Source: Guillardia theta CCMP2712
Taxonomy: Eukaryota > Protista > Cryptophyta
Direction of reading: 5' to 3'
Length of the DNA stretch: 64,000 nucleotides
Assembly: GCF_000315625.1 (NCBI RefSeq)
Contig: NW_005434669.1
Span: forward strand, 1,163,659 to 1,227,658
The notes beneath the pieces were generated by a model. The model was not told where the DNA came from, searched no databases, and saw only the letters and a program-made list of their open reading frames with translations. The translations under genes were made by a program, and so were the position numbers. Below are positions 5,441 to 15,816 of this stretch, one piece after another (within the stretch, counting starts at the first letter, position 1; the number at the start of each line of letters is the position of its first letter).

Positions 5441-8400
5441 ATGATTACTAGAATGGTTACTAGAATGTTTCCTTCCCTCAACAACAAAACCGTTTTCGCA
5501 CATCTTGTGTTGGCGCTGTTGGGCTTCGTACACGTTCAAGGAGATCGATGTACCGACGTCCCAACGTCCAGATGCTGCCCGGATGGCATCAAACATCTCG
5601 AGAGCAAGAACACGACCATCCCCATGCATCCTGTCGACAGAGAGGCTCTGGTGAACTTCCGACGCGCCATTGGGAAGCATGACGGGCTGCTCAACAACTG
5701 GTATATTGACGATCCGAGCTCGCATCCGTGTGACTGGTCAGGAGTGATCTGTGACTGCTGTGCGCTGTATCCAGCGGATGGGTTGGACTTCTGCGACGGC
5801 ATCGACACCACCTACCAGCATGTCTACCACCTTGACTTCGGCCCTTCCAAGCCTTCGAACAAACGCCTCAATGGCTATCTGTCGCCCTATCTTGGGAATC
5901 TGACGGAGCTGAGGCTGGCGTATCTTCATGTGAATGAGTTCTCTGGAGAGATTCCCCGAGAGATGGCGAGGCTGCAGAAGCTGCAGAGGCTGGTGCTTCG
6001 TGACAACCAGCTGACGGGTCCTCTGCCGGCCGAGCTGGGCTCCATGCTCGCGCTGAAAGATCTCAACGTCGAGGTGAACAAGTTTGAAGGAGCGATACCG
6101 CTGGAATGGTGCAACCTGATAAAGTCTGTCAATAGCAAAAAGTTGCTGGACGTCAACATTGTTACACCAGCCAACAACCCAAGTCTCTGCGGCCCTGTGC
6201 CCGAGTGTCTTGTGAAGCAGGGAAAGCTGCGTACTGCCAACGTGGTAGGAACGTTTCTACAGGTCGACGACTCGGTGGACAACCCCGGGAGGGTACAGGG
6301 AGTGTGCGACCTGACCCCGGCAGTGTGCAGGGCGGAGGAGGGGTGCGGCATCAGGTCGGAGACGGTGATCGCGTCGCTGCAGGAGTTCTCGTTCGAGTTC
6401 CCGGAGTTCTCGGACCCGGACAGCGGGATGCGGTCCTACTACTGGGGGATAGACATGTGCGACGACGAGACCTCCTGCCACGATCGAGACGACGCCATGG
6501 CCTTCACTGCCTTGACGGCCATCTCGTACAAGACCTCGGACGGGCTGACCATGTACCGGCAGAAGTACAAGGCCAACGGGCTCGCGCTGATCAACGGAGG
6601 GTGGTACAAGATCTTGCTGAAGGGATACAACGGGGCTGGGCCTCCTCTGTCGACGACGATATCGTCCAGGCCGTTCCTGGTGGACTCGACGCCTCCGCTG
6701 CCGTCTACTATCTATGACTCGCAGTTCTGCAAGGAGCCGATTTTGGTTCAAGACAACGCAGTGCTGGAGGCGTGCTGGTCAGACTTCGTGGAGGCTGAGT
6801 CAAGCGTAGTGCGGTATGAGTATCGCGTGCACAAGCGCAGGAGAGACGGAGAGAGCTCCGAGGCCGTGGGCGAATGGAAGAGCGTCAACAAGACGGCGTA
6901 CACAGCAAGGACCGGTCGTTATGCCGTGTCTGAGAGCGGGTACAGGCTAGAGGACGGGTGGGTCTACTTCTATGAGGTGAGAGCGACCAACGCAGCCGGG
7001 CTCAAGTCGAGCAGCTCGAGTCGAGGGGTGCTGTACTCGCCGACCAACCAACGGCTTCTGCTGGCGATCATCCTGTCCGTGATCATTCCTGTGGTGTTGC
7101 TGGGCTGCCTGGGGGGATGGGCGTACAAGCGGATGGAGCACCACTACCAGCACGTGGAGCAGCAGGAGAGGAGGAGGAAGCATCAGATGGACAGCATGAA
7201 GGAGATCTACGACGTGCTTGTTATGAAGCCTTCGCCCTTGGTCGGGAAGCCTTGCCCGTCGTCTTTAGACGCGAGTCACGATCTGAAAATGCATCATAGT
7301 GAAAGAGTGCGTGGAGAGTGTGACATGATGGATCAGCGAGCAGAGGCTGTCTTCACAGCTGAGAACGTAACCTTCGTCATCACCGACATGGAGTCCAGCA
7401 CGCTTCTAGCTGAGACCAACCCCGCCCTCTTCCGGGAGATCCTCGAGATCCACGACGCGCTTGTGCGGCAGCTGGTGGACGAGTACTCGGGGTACGAGGT
7501 CATGTCGCAGGGCGACTCCTTCGAGCTCGCCTTCGTCGAGCCGTCTCTCGCCGTCTGCTTCTGCAACGCCCTGCAGACGCGGCTGATGAAGCACGAGTGG
7601 GACAAGCGGGTGCTGGGCCTGTCGGGGTGCGAGGAGATGTACGACGAGCACGAGAGGCTGGTGTACCGGGGGCCGCGAGTGAGGGTGGGAGCGCACCTGG
7701 CGAGGAAGGGAAGGGACTTCACGGTGAGGATCCACGACATCACGCGGGACATGGTGTTCGAGGGGGAGGGGTACAAGATCGCTCAGGCGATAGGGAACGG
7801 GGCGCAAGGGGGTCAGACGCTGATCTCGCAGGAGCTGTTCGAGGCCATCTCCTTCTGCTCCGGACTGTACAAGGCAGGCAACCCGATCCTGCACGAGCTG
7901 GGGGTGTACCAGGTGGGAGGAGACAGCAGCAGCGTCAAGGGGACTCAGGTCAAGCTCTACCAGCTGTCTGGACCAGTGTGGAAGCTGCCGACGGAGCCTG
8001 TGCGAGGGTTTAGCGGGAGCCTGCGAGGGCTTCACCAGGTGACGGAGGGGCGGCAGCTGCGCGTGCACCCGCTCGAGCAGTCCTTGTCGCTGGCGAGGAT
8101 GAACACGACGTGCGTGTGTCTGGGGGTGGTGGGGGTGCCGGGGAGCAGGCGGGCTCTTGCTGAGGCGTGGATGAGAGAGACGGCGACGCTGGTGGCGCAG
8201 AGCTTCCGGGGGCACGTGATGGAAGGAGAGGGGGAGGAGGAGACGTTTGTGGTGTTTCCCAACCCCAAGTACGCGACTCACTTCGCCATGACCGCGCAGG
8301 TCGTCCTGCTGCACTCGACGCTGCCGTTCGAGGGGCTGCCGGACCTGTACAAGGAGGAGCACGGCATCGACGGGCAGCTGCTGTACGCGGGGCCGCGGGT

Positions 8401-9409
8401 GGGGATGGGGATGGTGACGTTGGAGGGGATGCTTCGGGAGTCAGAGGCAGCGCTGACGGAGGACCTGGAGGGTCTGATGGCGGGGGCGAGCAGGACGAGG
8501 CGACTGGCGCATGGGGGGCAGGTGGTGCTGGACGAGAAGAGCTGGAAGTACATGAGGAACATGATGCCGAGCCGCTGCGTGGGCATCGACCTGGGGGCTC
8601 ACTGGCTGGGGGGCGGGGCCTCGGGGAGCGGAGAGGTGCAGAAGCTGTACGAGATGAGCCCGAGCGTGCTGGCAGGACGATGGTTCCCGTCGATCGAGTC
8701 AGAGAGGATGGTGAGCAGGGGGTACCGGGAGTCGCCGGACCCGAAGCAGGGGATCGCGGTGATGTTCCTACGGCTCAAGGAGGCGGCGAGCGCGGGGCCG
8801 GAGGCGGAGGAGAGCTGGAGGGAGGGGCAGGAGAAGATCGGGCAGATCCTGCGACAGGCGCTGGAGGAGTACGGCGGGTACGAGTGCAAGGAGGCAGAGG
8901 CGGGGAAGTTCACGCTGGTGTTCGACGACCTGGGGATGGCCATGGCCTTCGGGCTGACGGTGCAGAAGGAGTGGGAGGCGCTGTGGGAGCCTTGGGGGAA
9001 GAGGAGGGAGGGAGAGGACGAGGGGCGGGGGAAGGAGGAGGAGCAGGGCAGGAAGTCGTCGCTGCAGGTGGGGCTGGCGTACGGGACGGAAGCGTTCAGG
9101 AAGCCGCTGGTGAGCGGGAGAGCAGACTACTTCGGGGCTCTGCCCAACCTGGCGGCGAGGATCATGTCGCAGGCGGAGGGAGGGCAGCTCCTGCTGGAGT
9201 ACGAGGGGGCGATAGCGTGGATGCGGAAGGAGGGGAGGGAGCTGCCGGGGGTGGGGAGGAACGCGGTGGTGGAGGTGGACTTGAAGGGGGAGGGAGGAGG
9301 GAGGCGGAGGGTGGAGCTGAGCGTGGCGGGGGTGTACCAGCTGAAGGGGGTAGAGCGGGAGAGGGTCTTGGCAGAGCCGGTGCTGAGGCCACTGGAATGG
9401 GGACGGTGA
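5441..9409 (+). CDS. Single-pass receptor nucleotide cyclase, copy A: signal peptide + LRRNT/plant-type LRRs + 2 FN3-like + TM + 3 class III cyclase domains; intronless
   Basis: 1322-aa ORF. LRRNT cap (DREALVNF..NW..PCDWSGVIC); LxxLxLxxNxLxGxIP repeats; FN3-like units (DPDSG..Y, VRATNAAGL); TM LLLAIILSVIIPVVLLGCLGGWAY (~7055-7126); cyclase motifs VTFVITDMESST, GYEV..GDSF, DYFG..PNLAAR, AxGGQ (x3). True start may be ATG 5465. Confidence 0.9.
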   Translation: MITRMVTRMFPSLNNKTVFAHLVLALLGFVHVQGDRCTDVPTSRCCPDGIKHLESKNTTIPMHPVDREALVNFRRAIGKHDGLLNNWYIDDPSSHPCDWSGVICDCCALYPADGLDFCDGIDTTYQHVYHLDFGPSKPSNKRLNGYLSPYLGNLTELRLAYLHVNEFSGEIPREMARLQKLQRLVLRDNQLTGPLPAELGSMLALKDLNVEVNKFEGAIPLEWCNLIKSVNSKKLLDVNIVTPANNPSLCGPVPECLVKQGKLRTANVVGTFLQVDDSVDNPGRVQGVCDLTPAVCRAEEGCGIRSETVIASLQEFSFEFPEFSDPDSGMRSYYWGIDMCDDETSCHDRDDAMAFTALTAISYKTSDGLTMYRQKYKANGLALINGGWYKILLKGYNGAGPPLSTTISSRPFLVDSTPPLPSTIYDSQFCKEPILVQDNAVLEACWSDFVEAESSVVRYEYRVHKRRRDGESSEAVGEWKSVNKTAYTARTGRYAVSESGYRLEDGWVYFYEVRATNAAGLKSSSSSRGVLYSPTNQRLLLAIILSVIIPVVLLGCLGGWAYKRMEHHYQHVEQQERRRKHQMDSMKEIYDVLVMKPSPLVGKPCPSSLDASHDLKMHHSERVRGECDMMDQRAEAVFTAENVTFVITDMESSTLLAETNPALFREILEIHDALVRQLVDEYSGYEVMSQGDSFELAFVEPSLAVCFCNALQTRLMKHEWDKRVLGLSGCEEMYDEHERLVYRGPRVRVGAHLARKGRDFTVRIHDITRDMVFEGEGYKIAQAIGNGAQGGQTLISQELFEAISFCSGLYKAGNPILHELGVYQVGGDSSSVKGTQVKLYQLSGPVWKLPTEPVRGFSGSLRGLHQVTEGRQLRVHPLEQSLSLARMNTTCVCLGVVGVPGSRRALAEAWMRETATLVAQSFRGHVMEGEGEEETFVVFPNPKYATHFAMTAQVVLLHSTLPFEGLPDLYKEEHGIDGQLLYAGPRVGMGMVTLEGMLRESEAALTEDLEGLMAGASRTRRLAHGGQVVLDEKSWKYMRNMMPSRCVGIDLGAHWLGGGASGSGEVQKLYEMSPSVLAGRWFPSIESERMVSRGYRESPDPKQGIAVMFLRLKEAASAGPEAEESWREGQEKIGQILRQALEEYGGYECKEAEAGKFTLVFDDLGMAMAFGLTVQKEWEALWEPWGKRREGEDEGRGKEEEQGRKSSLQVGLAYGTEAFRKPLVSGRADYFGALPNLAARIMSQAEGGQLLLEYEGAIAWMRKEGRELPGVGRNAVVEVDLKGEGGGRRRVELSVAGVYQLKGVERERVLAEPVLRPLEWGR

Positions 9410-12400
9410 TTGAACTGAAGGCGATGGGATAGTTGACTAAGATGTCAGTCAGATGAATTTAGTATAAGAACTTGAATCATGAATCGTGACTGACCTGTGG
9501 GGCACCGTTAGGCTGGGCCGCGGGGCGGTTCAATGTTGACCGGCCGGTCTGACTCAGTGTCAATAGGGCCCGGTCCACTTCACTGTGCAACATCCTGAGT
9601 CACCGGGCCCCGGATAGTCACTGTGACGGTGGTCGGGTTGACTCATCCTGAGCCAGGCCCGAACCCTGGAACTTGCACGAACCACATCCCCACTATGTCC
9701 CAATCCTTTATATGGTCCACCCCAACCTGAACTGAACCCCTCAAATTCTTGCCGTTGAAGTACCTACCGGGTACTTCCGTTATATACCTGGTTTAGTACC
9801 CTTACTTCAAACACTTTGACAGACGGTCCATCTGTCTCTTGCCCAGAGTCCACCCCCTCATTCTCCCACCACCCCCACCCCCACTTCCTACGCCTCATTT
9901 GGGTTCATCAGTTCACGTGGCGAGACTCGAGCTCCTCCGCCATGAATCTCAACAAGAAGACCATCGCCGATGTCGACGTCAAGGACAAGCGCGTTCTCAT
10001 GCGCGTCGACTTCAACGTCCCTCAGGACAAGTCCTCTGGTGCCATCACCAACGTCCAGCGCATCGTCGGAGCCATGCCGACCATTCAGAAGGCTCTTGAC
10101 AACGGCGCCAAGGCGGTCATCCTTATGTCCCACTTGGGCCGCCCTGACGGCAAGCCGAACGCCAAGATGACCCTCAAGCCCGTCGCCGACAAGCTCGGAG
10201 AGCTCATGAACAAGCCCGTCACCTTTCTCCCTGACTGCGTCGGCCCTGAGGTCGAGGCTGCATGCGCAAACCCAGCTCATGGCTCCATCATCCTGCTTGA
10301 GAACCTTCGCTGGCACGTGGAGGAGGAGGGCAAGGGCATCGAGCATTCCGCCAGCTGCAACGGCAAGAAGTGCTCTGATGACTGCAAGCCGTTCAAGGCC
10401 ACCCCTGAAGAAGTCACCAAGTTCCGCGAGTCTCTTTCCAAGCTCGGAGATGTCTACGTCAACGACGCCTTCGGCACAGCTCATCGCGCCCACTCATCCA
10501 TGGTTGGCATGAAGGGCAAGATGCCTTGCGTCAGCGGTCTCCTCGTTGCCAAGGAGCTCGAGGCCTTCTCAAGCGTGCTCAACCCGGACAAGGTCAAGAG
10601 ACCTCTCCTCGCCATCGTTGGAGGGGCCAAGATCTCCGACAAGATTATGGTAATTGAGAATCTGATCGACCAGTCCGACGGAATCATCCTCTGCGGTGGC
10701 ATGGCCTACACCTTCATGAAGGTCTGCTTTGGCATGTCCATCGGCAAGAGCCTTTACGACCAGAAGGGTGAAGTCTCTTCCCTTCCTCTCCCTAACTTTC
10801 GCACACTTGTGATCTCGTTTCATTGTTGCTTTCCCTCCTCCAGTCCTCTCCGACTTCTTCTCTGTCTCCGTGCATGTTGCATGCTATTTCACCTCTTCGT
10901 CTTGCTCCTCTAGGATGATCTCTTCCTGCTGTCTCAGTTACGCTCACGCTTCTACCAACTGAGACCTGTCTTTGCAGGAGCCGAGCTGGCCCCCAAGCTG
11001 ATGGAGAAGGCTAAGACCAAGGGGATTGAGATCGTTCTGCCCTGCGACTGGGCCTGCGGCCAGGAGTTTAAGAACGATCAAGAGATCAAGTTTGTGACCA
11101 AGGAGGAGGGCATCCCCGACGGCTGGGAGGGAATGGACTGCGGGCCTGAGTCGATGAAGCTCTTCCGCGACAAGATCCTCTCCTCCAAGACCGTCGTGTG
11201 GAACGGACCAGCTGGAGTGTTCGAGTTCGACAACTTCTCCAAGGGAACCAAGGCTCTCCTCGACGCGGTCGCTGAGACAACAGCTGCTGGAAACAACGGA
11301 ATCATTGGAGGAGGAGACTCTGCCACTGCTGCTGCCAAGTTCAACATGGAGGATCAGGTTTCCTTCGTGTCCACAGGCGGAGGAGCATCCTTGGAGCTGC
11401 TTGAGGGCAAGATCTTGCCAGGCATTGAGGCGTTGGATGACAACTAAACATTCAATAAATTAATTTCAAGTGAGCAGGACGGGAATGACATAATGGTGTT
11501 GCTGATGAAACAACTTGAGAACTCAGTGTTTTGAACATTTACCACGACCAAACGACAATCCTTGGGCAAACAGCATCGCCACCAGCAAGCGTAAGGTGAC
11601 ATGGAAAAAGTGACAACAAATGACTCAGGCCTTGGCTGGGAGCCGCGTGGCTGCCCCTTCAGCTTACGCCGCACTCAGAGGTCAAGGGCTGAAAGTTCAA
11701 TCCACCCTCGAACAAATGTCGGGGTCTCTGAACACGCAGCACACACGGCCCTGCGACATTCCTTCAACAAGTAACCCGTACGTCAGTCACGATTTCTTAT
11801 ACCAACTTCATTGCTAAACAAACTCACTGACTGACTTCAGTCACATTCCTCAGCCCGTGCTCCTACTCCTCCCCTTCCAGTGGCATCAGCACCGGCTCTG
11901 CCAAGACCCTCTCCCGCTCTACCCCCTTCAGCTGGTACACCCCCGCCACGCTCAGCTCCACCCTCCGCCTCCCTCCTCCCTCCCCCTTCAAGTCCACCTC
12001 CACCACCGCGTTCCTCCCCACCCCCGGCAGCTCCCTCCCCTCCTTCCGCATCCACGCTATCGCCCCCTCGTACTCCAGCAGGAGCTGCCCTCCCTCCGCC
12101 TGCGACATGATCCTCGCCGCCAGGTTGGGCAGAGCCCCGAAGTAGTCTGCTCTCCCGCTCACCAGCGGCTTCCTGAACGCTTCCGTCCCGTACGCCAGCC
12201 CCACCTGCAGCGACGACTTCCTGCCCTGCTCCTCCTCCTTCCCCCGCCCCTCGTCCTCTCCCTCCCTCCTCTTCCCCCAAGGCTCCCACAGCGCCTCCCA
12301 CTCCTTCTGCACCGTCAGCCCGAAGGCCATGGCCATCCCCAGGTCGTCGAACACCAGCGTGAACTTCCCCGCCTCCGCCTCCTTGCACTCGTACCCGCCG

Positions 12401-15400
12401 TACTCCTCCAGCGCCTGTCGCAGGATCTGCCCGATCTTCTCCTGCCCCTCCCTCCAGCTCTCCTCCGCCTCCGGCCCCGCGCTCGCCGCCTCCTTGAGCC
12501 GTAGGAACATCACCGCGATCCCCTGCTTCGGGTCCGGCGACTCCCGGTACCCCCTGCTCACCATCCTCTCCGACTCGATCGACGGGAACCATCGTCCTGC
12601 CAGCACGCTCGGGCTCATCTCGTACAGCTTCTGCACCTCTCCGCTCCCCGAGGCCCCGCCCCCCAGCAAGTGAGCCCCCAGGTCGATGCCCACGCAGCGG
12701 CTCGGCATCATGTTCCTCATGTACTTCCAGCTCTTCTCGTCCAGCACCACCTGCCCCCCATGCGCCAGTCGCCTCGTCCTGCTCGCCCCCGCCATCAGAC
12801 CCTCCAGGTCCTCCGTCAGCGCTGCCTCTGACTCCCGAAGCATCCCCTCCAACGTCACCATCCCCATCCCCACCCGCGGCCCCGCGTACAGCAGCTGCCC
12901 GTCGATGCCGTGCTCCTCCTTGTACAGGTCCGGCAGCCCCTCGAACGGCAGCGTCGAGTGCAGCAGGACGACCTGCGCGGTCATGGCGAAGTGAGTCGCG
13001 TACTTGGGGTTGGGAAACACCACAAACGTCTCCTCCTCCCCCTCTCCTTCCATCACGTGCCCCCGGAAGCTCTGCGCCACCAGCGTCGCCGTCTCTCTCA
13101 TCCACGCCTCAGCAAGAGCCCGCCTGCTCCCCGGCACCCCCACCACCCCCAGACACACGCACGTCGTGTTCATCCTCGCCAGCGACAAGGACTGCTCGAG
13201 CGGGTGCACGCGCAGCTGCCGCCCCTCCGTCACCTGGTGAAGCCCTCGCAGGCTCCCGCTAAACCCCCGCACAGGCTCCGTCGGCAGCTTCCACACTGGT
13301 CCAGACAGCTGGTAGAGCTTGACCTGCGTCCCCTTGACGCTGCTGCTGTCTCCTCCCACCTGGTACACCCCCAGCTCGTGCAGGATCGGGTTGCCTGCCT
13401 TGTACAGTCCGGAGCAGAAGGAGATGGCCTCGAACAGCTCCTGCGAGATCAGCGTCTGACCCCCTTGCGCCCCGTTCCCTATCGCCTGAGCGATCTTGTA
13501 CCCCTCCCCCTCGAACACCATGTCCCGCGTGATGTCGTGGATCCTGACCGTGAAGTCCCTTCCCTTCCTCGCCAGGTGCTCTCCCACCCTCACTCGCGGC
13601 CCCCGGTACACCAGCCTCTCGTGCTCGTCGTACATCTCCTCGCACCCCGACAGGCCCAGCACCCGCTTGTCCCACTCGTGCTTCATCAGCCGCGTCTGCA
13701 GGGCGTTGCAGAAGCAGACGGCGAGAGACGGCTCGACGAAGGCGAGCTCGAAGGAGTCGCCCTGCGACATGACCTCGTACCCCGAGTACTCGTCCACCAG
13801 CTGCCGCACAAGCGCGTCGTGGATCTCGAGGATCTCCCGGAAGAGGGCGGGGTTGGTCTCAGCTAGAAGCGTGCTGGACTCCATGTCGGTGATGACGAAG
13901 GTTACGTTCTCAGCTGTGAAGACAGCCTCTGCTCGCTGATCCATCAGTGATGAGGCAGTGTCTGACGTCTCGTCTCCATCCTCACTCTCTTCTTTTTCCT
14001 CACCGATGACCTCAAGACGTGGAACGACTTGTCCAGTAATAGGCAGCGGCATAAAGGCAAGCACGTCGTAGATCTCCTTCATGCTGTCCATCTGATGCTT
14101 CCTCCTCCTCTCCTGCTGCTCCACGTGCTGGTAGTAGTGCTCCATCCGCTTGTACGCCCATCCCCCCAGGCAGCCCAGCAACACCACAGGAATGATCACG
14201 GACAGGATGATCGCCAGCAGAAGCCGTTGGTTGGTCGGCGAGTACAGCACCCCTCGACTCGAGCTGCTCGACTTGAGCCCGGCTGCGTTGGTCGCTCTCA
14301 CCTCATAGAAGTAGACCCACCCGTCCTCTAGCCTGTACCCGCTCTCAGACACGGCATAACGACCGGTCCTTGCTGTGTACGCCGTCTTGTTGACGCTCTT
14401 CCATTCGCCCACGGCCTCGGAGCTTTCTCCGTCTCTCCTGCGCTTGTGCACGCGATACTCATACCGCACTACGCTTGACTCAGCCTCCACGAAGTCTGAC
14501 CAGCACGCCTCCAGCACCTCGTCTACTCGTGCAGTATCCTCCTCCTTGCAGAACTGCGAGTCATAGATAGTAGACGGCAGCGGAGGCGTCGAGTCCACCA
14601 GGAACGGCCTGGACGATATCGTCGTCGACAGAGGAGGCCCAGCCCCGTTGTATCCCTTCAGCAAGATCTTGTACCACCCTCCGTTGATCAGCGCGAGCCC
14701 GTTGGCCTTGTACTGCTGCCGGTACATGGTCAGCCCGTCCGAGGTCTTGTACGAGAAGGCCGTCAAGGCAGTGAAGGCCATGGCGTCGTCTCGATCGTGG
14801 CAGGAGGTCTCGTCGTCGCACATGTCTATCCCCCAGTAGTAGGACCGCATCCCGCTGTCCGGGTCCGAGAACTCCGGGAACTCGAACGAGAACTCCTGCA
14901 GCGACGCGATCACCGTCTCCGACCTGATGCCGCACCCCTCCTCCGCCCTGCACACTGCCGGGGTCAGGTCGCACACTCCCTGTACCCTCCCGGGGTTGTC
15001 CACCGAGTCGTCGACCTGTAGAAACGTTCCTACCACATGCGCGGTACGCAGCTTTCCCTGCTTCACAAGACACTCGGGCACAGGGCCGCAGAGACTTGGG
15101 TTGTTCGCCGGATGAACAACATTGATGTCGATGAGCTTGTTGCTATTGACAGACTTTATCAGGTTGCACCATTCCAGCGGTATCGCCCCTTCAAACTTGT
15201 TGACATCAAAGTACAGGTCCTTCAGCGCGAGCATGGAGCCCAGCTCGGCCGGCAGAGGACCCGTCAGCTGGTTGTCTCGCAGTAGAAGTCTCTGCAGCTT
15301 CTGCAGCCTCGCCATCTCTCGGGGAATCTCTCCAGAGAACTCATTCACATGAAGATACGCCAGCCTCAGCTCCGTCAGATTCCCAAGATAGGGCGACAGA

Positions 15401-15771
15401 TAGCCATTGAGGCGTTTGTTCGAAGGCTTGGAAGGGCCGAAGTCAAGGTGGTAAACATGCTGGTAGGTGGTGTCGATGCCGTCGCAGAAGTCCAACCCAT
15501 CCGCTGGATACAGCGCACAGCAGTCACAGATCACTCCTGACCAGTCACACGGATGCGAGCTCGGATCGTCAATATACCAGTTGTTGAGCAGCCCGTCATG
15601 CTTCCCAATGGCACGTCGGAAATTCACCAGAGCCTCTCTGTCGACAGGATGCATGGGGATGGTCGTGTTCTTGCTCTCGAGATGTTTGATGCCATTCGGG
15701 CAGCATCTTGACGTTGGGACGTCGGTACATCGATCTCCTAGAACGTGTATGAAGCCCGACAGCGCCAACAC
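5506..15771. repeat. Large inverted repeat: arms ~5506-9397 and ~11875-15771, with a ~2.5 kb spacer containing PGK
   Basis: The two receptor ORFs are reverse-complement near-identical, their shadow ORFs are duplicated, and homology stops at about the CDS ends. Confidence 0.95.
9942..11447 (+). CDS. PGK: Phosphoglycerate kinase, cytosolic type (exons 9942-10767 and 10978-11447)
   Basis: Motifs [82 protein letters not shown] intron 10768-10977 keeps frame (QKG|[10 protein letters not shown]). No targeting extension before MNLNKK. Confidence 0.98.
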
Positions 15772-15816
15772 AACAACAGAGAGCCAGTGTTTTGCAGGAG
15801 GTCGCGACAGGAGCAT
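11863..15816 (-). CDS. Single-pass receptor nucleotide cyclase, copy B (paralog of 5441-9409); intronless
   Basis: 1317-aa ORF with the same domain order and motifs. Differs in the signal peptide, LRR patches, one FN3 loop, the juxtamembrane linker, a few point changes and the last residues. Confidence 0.9.
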   Translation of the reverse strand: MLLSRPPAKHWLSVVVLALSGFIHVLGDRCTDVPTSRCCPNGIKHLESKNTTIPMHPVDREALVNFRRAIGKHDGLLNNWYIDDPSSHPCDWSGVICDCCALYPADGLDFCDGIDTTYQHVYHLDFGPSKPSNKRLNGYLSPYLGNLTELRLAYLHVNEFSGEIPREMARLQKLQRLLLRDNQLTGPLPAELGSMLALKDLYFDVNKFEGAIPLEWCNLIKSVNSNKLIDINVVHPANNPSLCGPVPECLVKQGKLRTAHVVGTFLQVDDSVDNPGRVQGVCDLTPAVCRAEEGCGIRSETVIASLQEFSFEFPEFSDPDSGMRSYYWGIDMCDDETSCHDRDDAMAFTALTAFSYKTSDGLTMYRQQYKANGLALINGGWYKILLKGYNGAGPPLSTTISSRPFLVDSTPPLPSTIYDSQFCKEEDTARVDEVLEACWSDFVEAESSVVRYEYRVHKRRRDGESSEAVGEWKSVNKTAYTARTGRYAVSESGYRLEDGWVYFYEVRATNAAGLKSSSSSRGVLYSPTNQRLLLAIILSVIIPVVLLGCLGGWAYKRMEHYYQHVEQQERRRKHQMDSMKEIYDVLAFMPLPITGQVVPRLEVIGEEKEESEDGDETSDTASSLMDQRAEAVFTAENVTFVITDMESSTLLAETNPALFREILEIHDALVRQLVDEYSGYEVMSQGDSFELAFVEPSLAVCFCNALQTRLMKHEWDKRVLGLSGCEEMYDEHERLVYRGPRVRVGEHLARKGRDFTVRIHDITRDMVFEGEGYKIAQAIGNGAQGGQTLISQELFEAISFCSGLYKAGNPILHELGVYQVGGDSSSVKGTQVKLYQLSGPVWKLPTEPVRGFSGSLRGLHQVTEGRQLRVHPLEQSLSLARMNTTCVCLGVVGVPGSRRALAEAWMRETATLVAQSFRGHVMEGEGEEETFVVFPNPKYATHFAMTAQVVLLHSTLPFEGLPDLYKEEHGIDGQLLYAGPRVGMGMVTLEGMLRESEAALTEDLEGLMAGASRTRRLAHGGQVVLDEKSWKYMRNMMPSRCVGIDLGAHLLGGGASGSGEVQKLYEMSPSVLAGRWFPSIESERMVSRGYRESPDPKQGIAVMFLRLKEAASAGPEAEESWREGQEKIGQILRQALEEYGGYECKEAEAGKFTLVFDDLGMAMAFGLTVQKEWEALWEPWGKRREGEDEGRGKEEEQGRKSSLQVGLAYGTEAFRKPLVSGRADYFGALPNLAARIMSQAEGGQLLLEYEGAIAWMRKEGRELPGVGRNAVVEVDLKGEGGGRRRVELSVAGVYQLKGVERERVLAEPVLMPLEGEE

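Follow-up and report, generated by a model that had tools for sequence, protein, structure and literature searches.

How might a receptor cyclase work when none of its cyclase domains holds a complete active site? The question is raised by an open reading frame (ORF) in a 64,000-nucleotide stretch of the genome of the cryptophyte alga Guillardia theta CCMP2712 (contig NW_005434669.1, positions 1,163,659 to 1,227,658; hereafter the window). The ORF, at 5441-9409 on the plus strand, is uninterrupted and encodes 1322 residues, arranged as a signal peptide, a plant-type leucine-rich repeat (LRR) ectodomain, one membrane helix and three class III cyclase homology domains (CHDs), which we call D1, D2 and D3. 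The catalytic residues are split between D1 and D3, with a dead D2 between them. Judged by these residues, the protein is probably a receptor-type adenylyl cyclase (AC), specific for ATP, with one composite site made by D1 and D3. The parts of the gene that carry the argument are as follows.

5441..9409, plus strand: complete intron-less coding sequence of the receptor cyclase, 1322 residues (ORF list; colinear contigs; RNA reads at the 3′ end)
7346..7990, plus strand: D1, C1-like cyclase domain, residues 636-850 (PF00211, 25.9 bits; GRESAG4.1, E 1.2e-14; fold match 1fx4)
8093..8686, plus strand: D2, degenerate cyclase domain without a usable catalytic set, residues 885-1082 (family profile, model, scaffold motifs)
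8732..9370, plus strand: D3, C2-like cyclase domain, residues 1098-1310 (GRESAG4.1 matches; fold match Rv1264)

Division of the catalytic residues between D1 and D3

In mammalian class III ACs, the C1 domain gives the metal-binding Asp pair and the C2 domain gives a Lys/Asp pair, which specifies ATP, together with Asn/Arg; one of the two resulting sites is active and the other is degenerate. D1 of the Guillardia theta protein has the residues of the C1 type. Both metal-binding Asp are present, D649 in ITD (7385-7387) and D692 in GDSF (7514-7516), as are the P-loop residues S653/T654 and the phosphate-binding Arg R748 (7682-7684), and the positions of Lys, Asp, Asn and Arg are taken by M688 (in GYEVMS), V772, K779 and A783 (in KIAQA). 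D3 has the residues of the C2 type: it keeps K1150 in GYECKE (8888-8890), D1229 in RADYFG (9125-9127), N1236 (9146-9148) and R1240 (9158-9160) in NLAAR, and K1302 (9344-9346), and it has neither metal-binding Asp, since R1111 (in MFLRLK) stands at metal position 1 and G1155 (in AGKF) at metal position 2. The spacing from Asp to Asn (+7) and Arg (+11) is that of mammalian C2. The full catalytic set is found once per chain, with D649/D692 in D1 and K1150/D1229/N1236/R1240 in D3, residues that we take to correspond to D396/D440 of mammalian C1 and K938/D1018/N1025/R1029 of C2.

Do these residues lie at catalytic positions? First, in a HMMER alignment of D1 with the solved GRESAG4.1 domain of Trypanosoma brucei (E 1.2e-14), FVITD and GDSF fall on FTD and GD, M688 falls on the Lys of YEVK, and KIAQA falls on N-M-A-A-R. 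Second, D3 as a single sequence matched GRESAG4.1 with an E value of 4.4e-4, its RADYFG...NLAAR lying on YDYYG...NMAAR, and a profile of 56 D3 sequences matched the same domain with an E value of 9.3e-25, placing K1150 on the Lys and Tyr/Lys/Arg and Gly on the two metal-binding Asp. Third, the catalytic positions of D1 and D3 share columns in one MAFFT alignment of 448 domains. A previous sequence-only reading of this locus had assigned C1-type residues to D1 and C2-type residues to D3, and had predicted ATP as the substrate from the Lys/Asp pair. Every D1 and D3 motif that it quoted is found in the translation at the codons given, and the alternative that the motif residues sit at non-catalytic positions is contradicted by the alignments with GRESAG4.1/4.3 and by the MAFFT alignment; the assignment and the prediction both stand.

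The fold was modelled with AlphaFold2 on the 693-residue module (residues 630-1322) with a 66-sequence alignment, which gave three CHD folds (predicted local distance difference test, pLDDT, 90.9; predicted template-modelling score, pTM, 0.89). Superposed on 1fx4 (GRESAG4.3) by VIA-align, modelled D1 matched with a Z score of 26.3 and a root-mean-square deviation (rmsd) of 2.4 Å over 213 of 231 residues at 29% identity. Because the 213 aligned residues of 1fx4 span model residues 1-236, D1 is a trypanosome-type domain that includes the C-terminal extension. Modelled D3 (model residues 473-686) matched Rv1264 (1y10) with a Z score of about 20. The presence of three class III cyclase domains, as first proposed from the sequence, is therefore borne out by the fold model together with the family profiles described below.

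A conserved motif of the R-x-F-P type follows each cyclase domain, and the linkers comprise residues 851-884 and 1078-1097 (window ~7991-8092 and ~8672-8731). In the trypanosome-type fold this motif falls within the C-terminal extension, so that what is repeated is a domain with its extension, and hardly any free linker separates the domains.

A degenerate domain between the two halves

At its six key positions, which were mapped by hand, D2 has G895, E928, E933, D1008, G1015 and T1019. The sequence-only reading had considered D2 to be dead and to have none of the catalytic residues. The loss of key positions agrees with the former claim, and the latter holds for G895, E928, G1015 and T1019; the acidic E933 at metal position 2 and D1008 (in DLEG) at the position of the adenine-specifying Asp may be retained, if the hand mapping is right. 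These residues leave D2 without the usual means of binding metals or stabilising the transition state.

Is D2 a cyclase domain at all? As a single sequence it had no match in Pfam or the PDB, and PF00211 matched none of the 29 D2 domains of the family. A profile built from these 29 domains, on the other hand, matched GRESAG4.3 (E 4e-14) and GRESAG4.1 (E 2.8e-13), both over the full length. The scaffold motifs of the fold are kept (F...A..RF...Q..L...WP; G.L..GPR.A..H; an invariant GGQ; LG.H), and the order of secondary-structure elements in modelled D2 is the same as in D1. The β-hairpin arm that is present in modelled D1 and D3 gives way to a longer helix in D2 (model residues 373-393). By these sequence criteria D2 is a genuine CHD whose catalytic set has been lost. 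It is the least conserved of the three domains (mean pairwise identity across the family 26%, against 36% for D1 and 31% for D3); it is conserved although dead, and its role would be structural or regulatory. Standard domain annotation misses this conserved dead domain: a Pfam scan of the whole protein found a single Guanylate_cyc (PF00211) match, which covers only the first half of D1 (25.9 bits against a cut-off of 21.9).

Conservation of the split in a protist family

Is the division of residues a peculiarity of one gene? A word-based search yielded few relatives, three of which (P0001-P0003) have all three domains of the module and divide the residues in the same manner. A profile search of 1.84 billion representatives with the module gave 22,951 matches at E<=1e-3 and 528 cluster representatives at E<=1e-30. 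When the best 150 profile matches were sorted by domain models, about 28 further three-domain proteins were found, together with about 37 two-domain proteins that have D1 and D3 without D2 (linkers mostly of 40-130 residues) and many tandem arrays with between two and seven cyclase domains each. Many such arrays consist mostly of domains in which the scorable Lys, second metal-binding Asp, adenine-specifying Asp, Asn and Arg are retained. P0012-P0015, P0113 and P0159 are protist proteins with four to seven tandem cyclase domains; in the five-domain array of Diplonema japonicum, the five scorable catalytic residues are retained in four domains, and the remaining domain is degenerate.

Conservation was counted on an alignment of 66 cluster representatives (A2), comprising 29 three-domain proteins and 37 two-domain proteins (rows 30-66). 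Metal position 1 was also counted on A2, as that column is misaligned in the 448-domain MAFFT alignment. The counts over the 66 representatives are as follows.

D1, metal-binding Asp 1: 63/66
D1, metal-binding Asp 2: 65/66
D1, Arg of R-x-G (R748): 66/66
D1, P-loop Ser: 64/66
D1, P-loop Thr: 60/66
D3, Lys position: Lys in 24 and Gln in 39, together 63/66
D3, Asp: 62/66
D3, Asn: 63/66
D3, Arg: 65/66
D3, Lys of the L-K-G motif (K1302): Lys or Arg in 54/66

The division between D1 and D3 is common to the 29 three-domain and the 37 two-domain representatives. Among the residues commonly seen at the reciprocal positions none is canonical: the Lys, Asp, Asn and Arg sites of D1 hold, for example, N/D/T, V/I/R and E/A, and the metal positions of D3 hold K/R/Y/F and G. 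Because the pattern is kept in relatives that are only 25-33% identical to the Guillardia theta protein, the split is not due to chance, and the persistence of a complementary pattern at this distance argues strongly for a single active site built by D1 and D3 together. The three-domain architecture is, on the same sequence comparison, a family trait and not unique to the Guillardia theta gene.

At the base-specifying position, Gln is found in 31 of the 37 two-domain relatives, with the Asp kept, and Lys in 21 of the 29 three-domain forms. Named members of the family include the green algae Pyramimonas (P0027, P0038) and Ostreobium quekettii (P0020, annotated as 'unnamed protein product') and the oomycete Phytophthora lilii (P0004, a two-domain form). 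In the literature searched, including full text, there was no description of three or tandem cyclase domains, nor of this family. The search defines a large unannotated family of protist receptor cyclases, with LRR and other ectodomains. Its natural two-domain and three-domain versions would allow a direct test of the effect of the inserted dead domain.

A proposed composite site and the predicted packing of the domains

How could the two halves form an active site? We propose the following mechanism. With the LRR ectodomain outside the cell and the three tandem trypanosome-type cyclase domains inside, the protein would be a single-pass receptor, in which a ligand on the ectodomain would alter the cytosolic module, either in its association or in its geometry. 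D1 and D3 would then close around ATP and two metal ions at a common interface. D1 would contribute the two metal-binding Asp, the P-loop Ser/Thr and the phosphate-binding Arg, and D3 the adenine-specifying Lys/Asp, the Asn/Arg that stabilise the transition state and a Lys for the γ-phosphate. D1 or D3 alone, or a pair of like domains, would be inactive. The product would be cyclic AMP (cAMP), as predicted from the Lys/Asp pair, and the second, pseudo-symmetric pocket would be degenerate, as in the animal enzymes. D2 would be retained for a non-catalytic role.

The packing of the domains was probed with the three-domain model and with an AlphaFold2 model of the two-domain relative P0094 (pLDDT 94.9, pTM 0.92). 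Both were compared with solved chains that hold two cyclase domains as a canonical dimer, namely soluble adenylyl cyclase (sAC), AC9 and 6yii, a comparison that had no positive control. Foldseek scores are template-modelling (TM) scores.

Three-domain module, D1+D3, against AC9 (6r3q_A): 331 residues, rmsd 26.5 Å, Z 15.3
Three-domain module, D2+D3, against sAC (4clf_A): 293 residues, rmsd 14.5 Å
Three-domain module, D1+D2, against 6yii: rmsd 23 Å
Three-domain module, adjacent pairs, against sAC/AC9 by Foldseek: TM by target 0.27-0.31, about one domain's worth
P0094, D1+D3, against AC9: 316 residues, rmsd 15.7 Å
P0094, D1+D3, against sAC: rmsd 15.3 Å
P0094, D1+D3, against sAC/AC9 by Foldseek: TM 0.27-0.31

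Several observations weigh against a composite D1+D3 site. Neither model places any pair of domains like C1·C2 of sAC or AC9; D3 by itself scores 13.1 bits with PF00211, under the cut-off; and no enzymatically characterised member of the family was found in the literature searched. Pairing of D1 with D3 within one chain, as the sequence-only reading had envisaged, is thus not seen in the predicted models. Part of the predicted arrangement is shared by the independent model of a green-algal relative, which was found by a shape search of the ESM Atlas (431 residues, 4.4 Å, TM 0.54). The unusual packing may represent a resting state, a catalytic interface that lies between chains, or a modelling artefact. 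We regard it as a serious caveat to the D1+D3 reading, and not as a refutation.

If the site is composite, pairing in cis (within one chain) and in trans (between two chains) appear about equally likely. Taken by itself, the trans arrangement is a possible but rather doubtful explanation. The domains of a single chain would be fixed and non-catalytic, and the site would be assembled only from D1 of one receptor and D3 of a second, for example in an antiparallel pair D1·D3′, D2·D2′, D3·D1′, so that ligand-driven association of receptors would be the switch that turns the enzyme on. The confident single-chain models of both the three-domain and the two-domain forms, in which no canonical pair is seen, are consistent with such pairing, as are the conserved R-x-F-P linkers, which are modelled as ordered and leave little free linker. 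The GRESAG4 domains, judged from the titles of the PDB entries, crystallised as monomers, and about 74 residues, part of which differ between the two paralogues at this locus, lead from the membrane helix to D1. However, two chains anchored in one membrane could not easily adopt an antiparallel arrangement, modelled D2 has no arm of the kind needed for a canonical D2·D2′ pair, and the single-chain geometry given by AlphaFold2 may be merely that of an inactive state.

The models might be taken further, to mean that each chain is a rigid non-catalytic stack, that the site is formed only across two receptors (D1 to D3′) and that the dead D2 acts as the central spacer. We consider this unlikely. 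If it were true, the residue split would guarantee the silence of a lone receptor, and the activation geometry would be one not described for class III cyclases.

Might D2 instead control a site that closes in cis? In the resting receptor, D2 would act as a built-in pseudo-partner that covers the face by which D1 or D3 dimerises, and ligand would displace it so that D1·D3 could close. Such a switch would agree with the conservation of D2 in 29 representatives although it is dead and with its location between the two catalytic halves, and the two-domain relatives show that the core design can do without D2. The model, however, contains neither a canonical D1·D2 pair nor a canonical D2·D3 pair by comparison with 6yii and sAC, and modelled D2 has no arm hairpin. 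The sequence-only reading had likewise suggested that D2 is a built-in inhibitor or a dimerisation partner to be swapped, and the models lend this no support; we consider a switch of this kind quite improbable.

The possibility that the module makes no cyclic nucleotide at all, as a pseudoenzyme or a nucleotide-binding scaffold, or that it makes a product other than cAMP, seems very remote to us. It would be in line with the fact that only D1 clears the Pfam cut-off and that no canonical dimer is predicted, and the predominance of Gln in place of the base-specifying Lys in the two-domain relatives implies that specificity is not uniform in the family. Yet the near-invariance of each catalytic residue in its proper half, at the low identity noted above, is hard to explain without catalysis, and the Guillardia theta protein itself has the Lys/Asp pair that is typical of ACs. 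We therefore favor a composite site formed by D1 and D3.

Kinship and origin of the design

By sequence, GRESAG4 is the closest relative of known structure for each of D1, D2 and D3, followed by Ma1120; no chain of a transmembrane adenylyl cyclase (tmAC) or of sAC was among the sequence-search matches of D1, the D2 profile or D3. In a rough FastTree phylogeny of 206 domains, all 66 D3 domains form a clade (support 0.88), and 28 of the 29 D2 domains form another (support 0.78), with D1 as its sister group (support 0.83). Next to branch, after D1 and D2, are the tandem-array domains, which are mostly complete. If this rough tree is correct, D2 would have arisen by duplication within the D1 lineage (aLRT-type support 0.83).

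Because D1, D2 and D3 all resemble the homodimeric trypanosome type most closely, the animal-like catalytic asymmetry seen here is probably of independent origin; the tree contained no animal sequences. The convergence proposed in the sequence-only reading is thus likely. The family would represent another origin of the animal-style cyclase design with one live site and one dead site, in this case from a trypanosome-type domain.

How does the protein compare with known systems? The receptor-type ACs of T. brucei (GRESAG4.1/4.3; PDB 1FX2, 1FX4) also have a large ectodomain, one membrane helix and a cytosolic cyclase. In GRESAG4 a single complete domain acts as a homodimer, and the ectodomain is of another, non-LRR kind; the Guillardia theta protein has three domains, none of them complete, and an LRR ectodomain. 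Because no domain is complete, the protein is not a GRESAG4-type enzyme. The mammalian membrane ACs (C1·C2) and sAC (ADCY10) likewise distribute a complementary set of catalytic residues over two domains of the same chain. The membrane enzymes differ in having twelve membrane helices instead of one and no extra dead domain between the halves, and the predicted packing does not superpose on AC9 or sAC, with which there is no close sequence kinship. As far as sequence can tell, the design is thus like that of the animal membrane and soluble ACs, whereas the lineage is different. The two-domain protist relatives (P0094, P0083, P0005 and P0004 of Phytophthora lilii) belong to the same D1 and D3 clades and have the same split and R-x-F-P linker, but they have no D2, mostly have Gln for the base-specifying Lys, and have different N-terminal parts. 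The working design itself is known from animal ACs; what is new is the family, the dead domain that is invisible to Pfam, and the unexpected predicted packing.

The ectodomain and the membrane helix

7055..7126, plus strand: single predicted membrane helix, residues 539-562, followed by KR (hydrophobic run read from the translation)
5633..6082, plus strand: ectodomain, with an LRRNT_2 cap at residues 65-105 and leucine-rich repeats at residues 145-214 (Pfam)

The hydrophobic run at residues 539-562 is the sole candidate for a membrane helix in the translation. In the Pfam scan of the whole protein, the LRRNT_2 cap (PF08263, E 8.6e-10) exceeded the curated cut-off, the matches to LRR_1, LRR_14 and LRR_8 were weak, and no kinase family was found. 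An LRRNT_2 cap and LRRs followed by one membrane helix are also the plan of the plant LRR receptor kinases, in which the output is a kinase; here it is a triple cyclase module. With cAMP as the predicted product, the protein would link plant-type LRR sensing to cAMP in an alga.

The region between the LRRs and the membrane helix (window 6300-7050, residues about 290-535) has no Pfam match. By eye, it resembles the juxtamembrane ectodomain of P0001-P0003, for example in a RATNAAGL-like motif. The ectodomains of P0001-P0003 otherwise differ, and P0002 and P0003 have Receptor L domains.

The gene, its inverted copy and the locus

Several public runs yielded assembled contigs that are colinear with the ORF. 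In RNA sequencing data from one run (60-nucleotide reads), coverage was limited to 9144-9505, which is the 3′ end of the gene, on a single strand; these reads indicate that the 3′ end of the ORF is transcribed. Many of them have short unmatched 5′ tails, and the data resemble a 3′-tag library.

11863..15816, minus strand: inverted paralogue with the same three-domain cyclase module, 1317 residues (ORF list)

The two copies differ in 11 of 693 module codons, six of which change a residue (A751E, W1055L and four of the last seven residues). They also differ in the signal peptide, in patches at residues 209-242 and 433-440, in the juxtamembrane stretch at 594-629 and in the last seven residues. 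The small number of codon differences suggests a recent duplication or gene conversion, and for the same reason the second copy provides no independent evidence for the split.

A phosphoglycerate kinase gene (9816-11447) lies between the two inverted receptor copies; it is split into two ORFs, with an apparent intron near 10.8-11.0 kb, which marks the DNA as eukaryotic. Both receptor genes have a G+C content of 0.60-0.66 (window 6001-10000 and 12001-14000), compared with 0.41-0.55 for most of the window, and both show a strong strand-specific GC skew.

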